In this document: positions 44,428 through 44,685 of the stretch, one piece after another
Layout of the letters: the number at the start of each line of letters is the position of its first letter
Numbering within the stretch: the stretch's first letter is position 1
Assembly (NCBI RefSeq): GCF_001194135.2
Contig: NC_068984.1
Location: forward strand, 64,590,168 to 64,654,167
Direction: 5' to 3'
Length of the DNA stretch: 64,000 nt
From: Octopus bimaculoides
Taxonomy: Eukaryota
Notes under the pieces: generated by a model
Told to the model about the DNA's origin: nothing
Databases searched by the model: none
The model's input: the letters and a program-made list of their open reading frames with translations, nothing else
Made by a program: the position numbers and the translations under genes

Positions 44428-44588
44428 TACATTATTTACATTATCTACATTTGACGGATATTCGTCCTCATCTTGTTTGTTGTTAACACAACGTTTCGGC
44501 TGATATACCCTCCAGCCTTCGTCAGGTGTCTTGGGGAAATTTCGAACCTGGGTTCTCATTCCTATCGATGTTACTATTATTATTATTA

Positions 44589-44619
<31 letters not shown>

Positions 44620-44685
44620 CAGGTTGCTGCCGTGAATCGAACTCGGAACCTTGGGGTTAGTAGCCCGCGCTCTTAACCACTACGC
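44428..44685 (-). mobile_element. tRNA-headed SINE-like element carrying a hammerhead ribozyme (5' end lost in gap)
   Basis: Minus strand: tRNA-like head GCGTAGTGGTTAAGAGCGCGGGCTACTAACCCCAAGGTTCCGAGTTCGATTC (partial A box, B box GTTCGATTC), (AAT)n spacer 44575-44617, body with hammerhead, 9-nt tandem tail (ATGTA[A/G]ATA). First T4 terminator is at 44421-44418. Confidence 0.75.
44485..44530 (-). ncRNA. Minimal type I hammerhead ribozyme motif
   Basis: Minus strand reads GACAC-CUGACGA-A-GGCUG-(GAGGGUAUAU)-CAGCC-GAA-ACGU-U-GUGUU. Stem I GACAC/GUGUU (4 WC + 1 GU), core CUGANGA with an extra A, stem II GGCUG/CAGCC, GAAA, palindromic ACGU as stem III, GUU cleavage triplet. Predicted cut between 44490 and 44489. 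Confidence 0.8.

Follow-up and report, generated by a model that had tools for sequence, protein, structure and literature searches.

A dispersed repeat family in octopus with a tRNA-like head and a Penelope-type minimal hammerhead motif: a candidate Penelope-dependent SINE

In a 64,000-nucleotide (nt) stretch of the Octopus bimaculoides genome (contig NC_068984.1 of assembly GCF_001194135.2, forward-strand positions 64,590,168 to 64,654,167; this whole stretch is called the window below, and positions are counted from its first letter), a minus-strand segment combines a transfer RNA (tRNA)-like head with a hammerhead ribozyme motif. The locus raises the question of whether the two are parts of one mobile element and, if so, which machinery moves it and whether its ribozyme cuts. 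A preliminary description made from the sequence had listed on the minus strand an A-box remnant, a B box, an (AAT)n run, a hairpin GAACC-CA-GGTTC, the hammerhead and a 9-nt tandem tail, and all of these are present (Table 1). The segment proved to be one copy of a dispersed family with constant module order. As to its mobilisation, we lean towards an octopus tRNA-headed short interspersed element (SINE) whose 3′ module is derived from, and recognised by, a Penelope-like element (PLE), a reading that draws on sequence comparison.

Within the window the unit is single-copy, its (AAT)n run aside, and no free copies of the head were detected there (blastn). The only open reading frame (ORF) across the unit, a 75-amino-acid frame that runs into unique flanking sequence, matched 76 cluster representatives in a search of 1.84 billion representative proteins, and every match was confined to the repeat-encoded part. 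Neither a protein search with a plus-strand 67-amino-acid ORF running from ribozyme to head nor an exact-pattern scan of viral contigs gave a match. The 76 matches split into two groups, A and B. Group B resembles the window frame (MRTQVRNxxKTPDEGWRVYQPKRCVNNKQDEDKYPSNVNNVNN...), and is led by an uncharacterised Octopus bimaculoides protein and by the N-terminal part of the O. bimaculoides 'dystrobrevin beta isoform X1', in keeping with the octopus origin supposed in the preliminary description. Nine group B proteins could be traced to DNA in Logan contigs, which together with the window gave 11 copies at 9 loci.

Alignment of these copies revealed a uniform order of tRNA-like head, AT-rich linker, ACATCAGGAATGAGAACCCAGGTTCGAAATTCC, hammerhead, conserved 3′ segment and 9-mer repeats. 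The same head and AT-rich linker lie 5′ of the body in all seven informative copies, that is, those with enough sequence upstream of the body (the window, both copies in L011, L016, L021, L022 and L026); contigs L010, L020 and L027 stop inside the linker, and in none of the 11 copies is the body preceded by unrelated DNA. The linker ranges from 10 to 75 nt (about 10 nt in L011, about 75 nt in L021). The earlier proposal of one unit rather than a chance juxtaposition was thereby borne out, since head and ribozyme travel together throughout a multi-copy family. With 11 copies and dozens of ORF-level relatives, the family is dispersed, short, non-coding and constant in module order, as a SINE is. 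The window copy is the nearest to the family consensus (131 of 142 positions in the body, 15 CpGs kept), suggesting a relatively young and intact member. The idea that the body repeatedly inserted into the (AAT)n tails of an independent, head-only SINE was rejected, as no free heads were found in the window and the order and orientation of head and body are constant.

The predicted hammerhead reads, in order, GACAC CUGACGA A GGCUGG-AGGGUAUA-UCAGCC GAA ACGU U / GUGUU (44530-44485, minus strand), the slash marking the predicted cleavage site. The window copy and the two family consensus sequences have every base of the conserved core (C3 U4 G5 A6 N7 G8 A9 ... G12 A13 A14 A15.1 ... U16.1 H17); within the core, free variation (C, U or A) is confined to N7, which is also the free position in hammerheads. 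When pairing was counted in 16 sequences, eight per group, 77% of the cells were paired, compared with 16-47% in slid controls. Helix II has 6 base pairs (bp) and is 85% paired in these sequences; its pair 25-39 is U-A in nine, C-G in five, U-G in two and unpaired in none of the 16, and one copy turns a C-G into G-C. Part of the helix II exchange follows CpG decay. Helix I has 5 bp in the window copy, but only three of its pairs are well kept across the families. In place of helix III stands a palindromic ACGU, which is kept in the consensus of both families. The minimum free energy fold includes helices I and II, both for the isolated region and for the whole unit.

In the minimal hammerheads of PLEs, one nucleotide on the 5′ side of helix II is left unpaired, helix II itself is longer, helix I spans 4-5 bp and lacks a defined loop, and helix III is reduced to a palindrome of 1-2 bp (PMC4209133). 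The window motif carries the unpaired A, the 6-bp helix II, the 5-bp helix I and the ACGU, so that its architecture matches the published hallmarks of a Penelope-type minimal type I hammerhead and the Penelope link suggested in the preliminary description is supported in this respect. Motifs of this class are for the most part dispersed and single, with some paired on opposite strands at a distance of 100-700 bp; in vitro, monomers were inactive and dimers weakly active (PMC4209133). A transcript of the octopus family with its single minimal motif would not be expected to cleave itself efficiently. Self-cleavage to define ends or to circularise, as suggested earlier, is therefore speculation, a single minimal hammerhead being nearly inactive as a monomer (PMC4209133).

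Our own hammerhead descriptor matched the 64-kb window only once, at 44485-44530. In Markov-1 simulated sequence of the same dinucleotide make-up the rate was 0.063 sites per 60 kb and fell to 0.013 when the helices were made stricter. As such matches would recur by chance in a large genome, the motif by itself is suggestive and not proof; what lifts the unit above chance is the recurrence of the same arrangement at other loci. The whole window gave no match of any kind in Rfam at the gathering score, and the Rfam models Hammerhead_1, Hammerhead_3, HH9, HH10 and Hammerhead_II gave none on a 386-nt stretch at this locus even at E ≤ 10. Rfam hammerhead models likewise failed to match the clear tandem units of group A, and the missing match is explained by the minimal class falling outside those models.

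The A-box-like GCGTAGTGG and the B-box-like GAGTTCGATTC in the head are spaced properly for a tRNA-type promoter. The Rfam tRNA model RF00005 gave the head 15.8 bits in a run at E ≤ 10, against a cut-off of 29 bits and with the match cut at its 5′ end, and ARAGORN detected no tRNA in the window or in other copies. Such a sub-threshold score is typical of degenerate SINE heads and is not proof of tRNA origin. As an assembly gap abuts the head, the first ~10 nt of the head are missing and neither the 5′ end nor the upstream flank can be read. At the other end, L021, L026 and also the sequences encoding proteins P0001, P0025 and P0075 continue for about 30 nt past the 9-mers, to ...ATCTCAAAAATAYAGAACAG, beyond which L021 and L026 diverge from each other; the window counterpart in pairwise alignment is ...TATATAGATC. 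As other copies run on to this point, the window copy ends near 44409. It had been stated that no T4 terminator occurs before 44421, just past a tail ending at 44428; the first T4 is indeed at 44421, but it lies just inside the copy. No long ORF lies near the unit, and no ORF with reverse transcriptase and GIY-YIG domains between pseudo-long terminal repeats (pseudo-LTRs), as in an autonomous Penelope, was found; the unit is at most a non-autonomous Penelope derivative.

Group A represents a sister family. It is very abundant, comprising at least 3,613 predicted proteins at E ≤ 1e-8 among 8,000 scored candidates, nearly all from long contigs of ENA assembly ERZ21867824 and a few from GenBank GCA_052426985.1. 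Its head, read by eye, is tRNA-like and unlike that of family B (TAGCTTAACGG..., GCAGGTTCAATCCTGAC), and is followed by a body of about 110 nt ending GTTCGAAGTTCC. Behind this come one to three head-to-tail units of about 129 nt, each running from just before the hammerhead to the 3′ end of the element, and the GTTCGAARTTCC motif of the family B body start also stands directly upstream of the first family A unit. Between a family A unit and the window copy, 76 nt align at 83% identity, a stretch that takes in the hammerhead and the ~30 nt after it; the remainder is unalignable. Because it is shared by two otherwise unalignable families, the ribozyme module behaves as the conserved core of a SINE superfamily. 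With tandem units a family A transcript would carry two hammerheads, and therefore the condition under which minimal hammerheads can act. Family A looks like a hybrid of SINE and retrozyme, and the ORFs of L024 and L025 resemble, by eye, assorted transposon fragments. A pattern scan of metagenomes gave nine matches, seven of them chance hits, lying in bacterial-like or otherwise unrelated DNA. The other two, L005:664-696 (+) and L008:315-347 (-), are AT-rich, eukaryote-like contigs with an isolated hammerhead of the same variant (CUGACGA + A ... CAGCC GAAACGUU, with a CCC/GGG helix I) and no recognisable head or informative ORF near it.

The arrangement of neighbouring copies bears on how the family inserts. 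L011 holds two complete copies head-to-head, each with its own hammerhead; L016 pairs a complete copy with an inverted head and linker, after which the contig runs out. At both loci the 5′ ends meet to within a few nucleotides, and four or five independent runs contain each junction. Inverted neighbours of this kind are not expected by chance, because the density in the window is about one copy per 60 kb. In family A, an inverted copy or 3′ fragment lies 115-137 nt upstream of the forward copy at both long-read loci. PLE insertions are known for an inverted, 5′-truncated copy adjoining the upstream pseudo-LTR, for partial tandems of the terminal module and for association with microsatellites (PMC8557442). 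The inverted pairs match this pattern as well as the opposite-strand pairs of minimal hammerheads 100-700 bp apart (PMC4209133), and the partial tandems of the family A module from hammerhead to 3′ end mirror pseudo-LTR formation. The Penelope link suggested in the preliminary description gained a further line of support in these insertion structures. The similarity of the arms of the inverted pairs is only marginal and does not establish a single-event origin. The head-to-head pair at L011:164-279 forms a long, nearly perfect hairpin that gives sub-threshold matches to several microRNA-precursor models (best MIR5380, 42 bits against a cut-off of 150 bits); such pairs could yield hairpin RNAs or false microRNA calls.

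Under the PLE-dependent reading, the element would be built of three modules: a tRNA-derived head whose A and B boxes presumably form an internal RNA polymerase III (Pol III) promoter, an AT-rich microsatellite linker, probably left over as a fossil tail from the SINE from which the head came, and a 3′ module of about 190 nt from the terminal, pseudo-LTR region of a PLE, which would have brought the minimal type I hammerhead and the short-repeat tail. Pol III would transcribe the element from head to tail, the 3′ module would be recognised by the reverse transcriptase/GIY-YIG endonuclease of a resident Penelope element, and integration would follow the Penelope mode, often leaving two copies head-to-head. 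The hammerhead would travel within this recognition and processing module and be retained as a part that the partner's machinery needs; in Penelope elements themselves its function is still called unknown (PMC7761336; PMC8557442). Cleavage could occur only where the palindromic ACGU pairs two motifs with each other, either in trans or, as in family A, in tandem, and would separate the 5′ ~200 nt with the promoter from the 3′ ~80 nt where the reverse transcriptase must prime. In octopus genomes, Penelope families have been active recently and about 900 SINE families are unclassified; the annotation mentions no ribozyme (PMC13282606). A bolder version, in which family A and family B belong to a PLE-parasitic SINE class with the minimal hammerhead as superfamily core domain across distant genomes, and in which Pol III transcripts of family A self-cleave as dimers and yield ~129-nt circles, is tentative and on balance doubtful.

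Several observations weigh against PLE dependence or against parts of the proposed structure. Short tandem repeats near the 3′ end also occur in the tails of CR1/L2-type long interspersed elements (LINEs). The head scores below the Rfam tRNA cut-off and is negative in ARAGORN, and the Rfam hammerhead models give the motif no score at all. Covariation support is real but modest, the tested structure having been derived from one aligned sequence. No Penelope lies in the 64-kb window, and PLE dependence rests on ribozyme type and insertion topology. The family B inverted pairs come from Logan contigs of a probably different octopod sample; L021, one of the three informative family B loci with upstream sequence, and L026 are without an inverted partner; and the arms of the pairs are mutual best matches only in the head (82% and 72%), not in the body. 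Target-site duplications are unreadable, the 5′ end of the window copy lying in the gap and the old copies being too diverged.

Because CR1/L2-type tails also bear short 3′ tandem repeats, a LINE partner remains a reasonable rival, and we consider it unlikely. The family would then be an ordinary tRNA SINE dependent on CR1, RTE, Dong-R4 or a similar LINE, which captured a fragment of a Penelope pseudo-LTR; the hammerhead would be passive cargo, and the tail with its tandem 9-mers the LINE recognition site. SINE bodies are known to combine pieces of LINEs with other fragments (PMC5786205), LINEs account for most recent activity in octopus (PMC13282606), and the hammerhead cores have decayed in most copies. 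Yet it is the hammerhead module, not the tail, that the two families have in common, and several copies run about 30 nt beyond the 9-mers; full-length head-to-head pairs and partial tandems at the level of the module are also Penelope traits that are atypical of LINEs (PMC8557442).

A retrozyme-like course of events, in which hammerheads paired in trans or in tandem cut the transcripts, the products are ligated into circles and reverse-transcribed by a rolling circle, and the tRNA head serves only as promoter, seems quite improbable for this family. It fits the one to three tandem units behind a single head in family A and the conserved ACGU of both families, since a tandem arrangement allows minimal hammerheads to work as dimers (PMC4209133) and is the defining feature of animal non-LTR retrozymes (PMC7761336). 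On the other hand, none of the 11 octopus-family copies has tandem units and no family B protein match has multiple stretches, PLE-type minimal motifs cleave poorly in vitro even as dimers (PMC4209133), and the ~129-nt unit is smaller than described retrozymes (~150-300 nt). With one hammerhead in the window unit and in every octopus-family copy, the octopus unit does not qualify as a retrozyme, and ideas of trans-dimers and circular RNA appear to fit family A better. Mere coincidence of an unrelated tRNA-type repeat, a microsatellite and a sequence resembling a hammerhead is very hard to credit. The loose descriptor rate of 0.06 per 60 kb in random sequence amounts to thousands of chance matches in a genome of 2-3 Gb, and Rfam reports no hammerhead; against this, the arrangement is the same in all informative copies, the core is kept in two diverged families with compensatory changes in helix II, and the sister family has thousands of ORF-level members.

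Table 1. Features of the window copy and of related loci, in window coordinates unless a contig is named
Feature	Position (strand)	Remarks
Whole unit	44685 down to ~44409 (-)	Head, linker, B-box-like stem, hammerhead core, 9-nt-repeat tail
tRNA-derived head GCGTAGTGGTTAAGAGCGCGGGCTACTAACCCCAAGGTTCCGAGTTCGATTCACGGCAGCAACC	44622-44685 (-)	5′ end cut by assembly gap
A-box remnant GCGTAGTGG	44685-44677 (-)	
B box GAGTTCGATTC	44644-44634 (-)	
(AAT)n AT-rich linker	44621-44570 (-)	From copy alignment; length and composition differ among copies
Conserved body start: junction ACATCGATAGGAATGA, stem and second B-box-like sequence	44569-44531 (-)	Kept in all family copies
Stem GAACC-CA-GGTTC	44555-44544 (-)	Overlaps second B-box-like GGTTCGAAATTTCC at 44548-44535
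Putative type I minimal hammerhead	44530-44485 (-)	Descriptor match, column conservation, minimum free energy fold
Helix I, 5′ strand GACAC	44526-44530 (-)	
Core CUGACGA	44519-44525 (-)	
Unpaired A and helix II GGCUGG/UCAGCC	44498-44518 (-)	8-nt loop
GAA, palindromic ACGU and U17	44490-44497 (-)	
Predicted cleavage	Between 44490 and 44489 (-)	
Helix I, 3′ strand GUGUU	44485-44489 (-)	
Conserved 32-mer AACAACAAACAAGATGAGGACGAATATCCGTC	44484-44453 (-)	3′ of cleavage site; kept in all family B copies
3′ tail	44409-44452 (-)	Aligned pairwise with L010, L016, L021, L022, L026
Three imperfect 9-mers AATGTAGAT/AATGTAAAT/AATGTAAAG	44452-44424 (-)	
First TTTT on sense strand	44421-44418 (-)	Copy-specific
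Terminal stretch after 9-mers AAATTTTATATAGATC, ending ATATAGATC	To ~44409 (-)	End approximate, ±10 nt
Assembly gap, 292 N	44686-44977	Adjoins head; outside element
Family A loci	L023; L024:9878-10439; L025:9415-10261	

The window probably includes host coding sequence. A minus-strand frame at 23781-24134 encodes half a CUB domain (Pfam PF00431, E = 5e-9, profile positions 5-49) and is probably an exon of a minus-strand CUB gene. The unit, on the same strand as this exon, would be in sense orientation if it lay in an intron of that gene, as the preliminary description considered; the accompanying worry that it could cut the pre-mRNA is weak, because a single minimal motif is not expected to self-cleave efficiently as a monomer. 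Elsewhere in the genome, the first ~36 of the 94 amino acids of P0021 (O. bimaculoides 'dystrobrevin beta isoform X1', GCA_001194135.2) come from a decayed copy of the SINE (GEGWRVYQPKCCVNNKQDEDKYPS), an apparent SINE-derived alternative first coding exon in sense orientation.

A different and more abundant SINE-like repeat occurs at 44978-45310 (+) and also at 50-160, 5443-5832, 14604-14893 and 20322-20446; at 5443-5525 it shows a tRNA-like head and a CORE-like CTTGGGCAAGTGTCTTC segment. Its body at 44978 starts right after the gap, in which its head would sit facing the head of the hammerhead-bearing SINE. The gaps of the window (888, 1990, 16165, 39619, 41349, 44686, 48903 and 52747, among others) are mostly flanked by microsatellites of the (TA)n/(CA)n type (YIYIYI or CVCVCV when translated). 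In a draft assembly from short reads such as this one, repeats, inverted SINE pairs among them, have probably been collapsed or lost. A 123-amino-acid ORF with an ATG start at 47196-47567 (+) contains an acidic stretch (…EEEEQEQEDPGEEE…). It gave no Pfam match at E ≤ 0.01, and we take it to resemble the C-terminal part of pogo/Tigger-type transposases.

Many animal genomes contain thousands of minimal hammerheads, which have been interpreted as remnants of truncated Penelope elements with 'a yet unknown role' (PMC4209133, PMC7761336). Joined to a tRNA-type head in a defined family, such a motif would gain a vehicle and a promoter, and many "orphan" ribozyme motifs in animal genomes may be the cargo of elements hitch-hiking in this way. 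The family would also be the first candidate SINE partner for PLEs, whose integration mechanism is poorly understood; the head and the ~190-nt module would offer a simple system for working out what is recognised by the reverse transcriptase of Penelope and if the ribozyme is required. In octopus genomics, it would assign some of the large 'unclassified SINE' fraction. If it exists, the PLE-parasitic SINE superfamily would be the first recognised class of its kind, a promoter-bearing bridge between SINEs and retrozymes, and would account for the thousands of orphan minimal hammerheads in animals.

Among known systems, SMalpha of Schistosoma has Pol III promoter boxes. It is, as described by Ferbeyre et al. 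1998 in the form cited in PMC8490949 and PMC4209133, likewise short, non-coding, dispersed and SINE-like, with a type I hammerhead. Its hammerhead is canonical, with loop-loop contacts, and is detected by Rfam-type models, whereas the octopus motif is minimal, with an unpaired A and no real helix III; the octopus element, compared with it by description, also belongs to another phylum and has a modular head-linker-body structure with an internal microsatellite. With the minimal hammerheads and pseudo-LTRs of PLEs (Cervera & de la Pena 2014, PMC4209133; a further source is Lunse et al. 2017, as cited in PMC4209133 and PMC7761336), the architecture of the octopus ribozyme agrees feature by feature. 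Dispersed PLE minimal hammerheads have been read as truncated PLEs (PMC4209133), whereas the octopus motif lies inside a defined non-autonomous element with a tRNA-like head and with no reverse transcriptase/GIY-YIG ORF near it. Animal non-LTR retrozymes (Cervera & de la Pena 2020; reviewed in PMC7761336) are also non-autonomous, hammerhead-bearing and thought to be PLE-dependent, and have been regarded as non-autonomous Penelope derivatives (bioRxiv 10.64898/2026.07.22.740005). The tandem ~129-nt units of family A resemble a small retrozyme array; retrozymes are, however, tandem repeats said to be promoter-less (PMC7761336) and bear canonical type I motifs, while the octopus element has only one unit, headed by a tRNA-type segment and carrying a minimal motif.

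The Ceph-SINEs (Akasaki 2010, as discussed in PMC5786205) have in common with the octopus element a head that derives from a tRNA, along with a modular body. Their Ceph domain consists of a CORE-like part and a fragment of an RTE 5′ untranslated region (PMC5786205); membership in this group was rejected, as the 23-nt RTE-like Ceph-domain string quoted there is absent from the unit by eye. The octopus OK/OR families (Ohshima & Okada 1994, as cited in PMC10886601) have tRNA-derived heads too, OK, OR1 and OR2 being compared by description only. A full-text literature search for hammerhead, SINE and octopus or cephalopod returned no description of such an element, Repbase/Dfam and the OK/OR sequences lying outside the comparison. 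Hammerhead-bearing SINE-like elements in schistosomes (SMalpha) and minimal hammerheads in Penelope elements are already known; what sets the present case apart is that a dispersed family unites a tRNA-type head with an internal microsatellite and one Penelope-type minimal hammerhead, and that a sister family has tandem hammerhead units behind its head.

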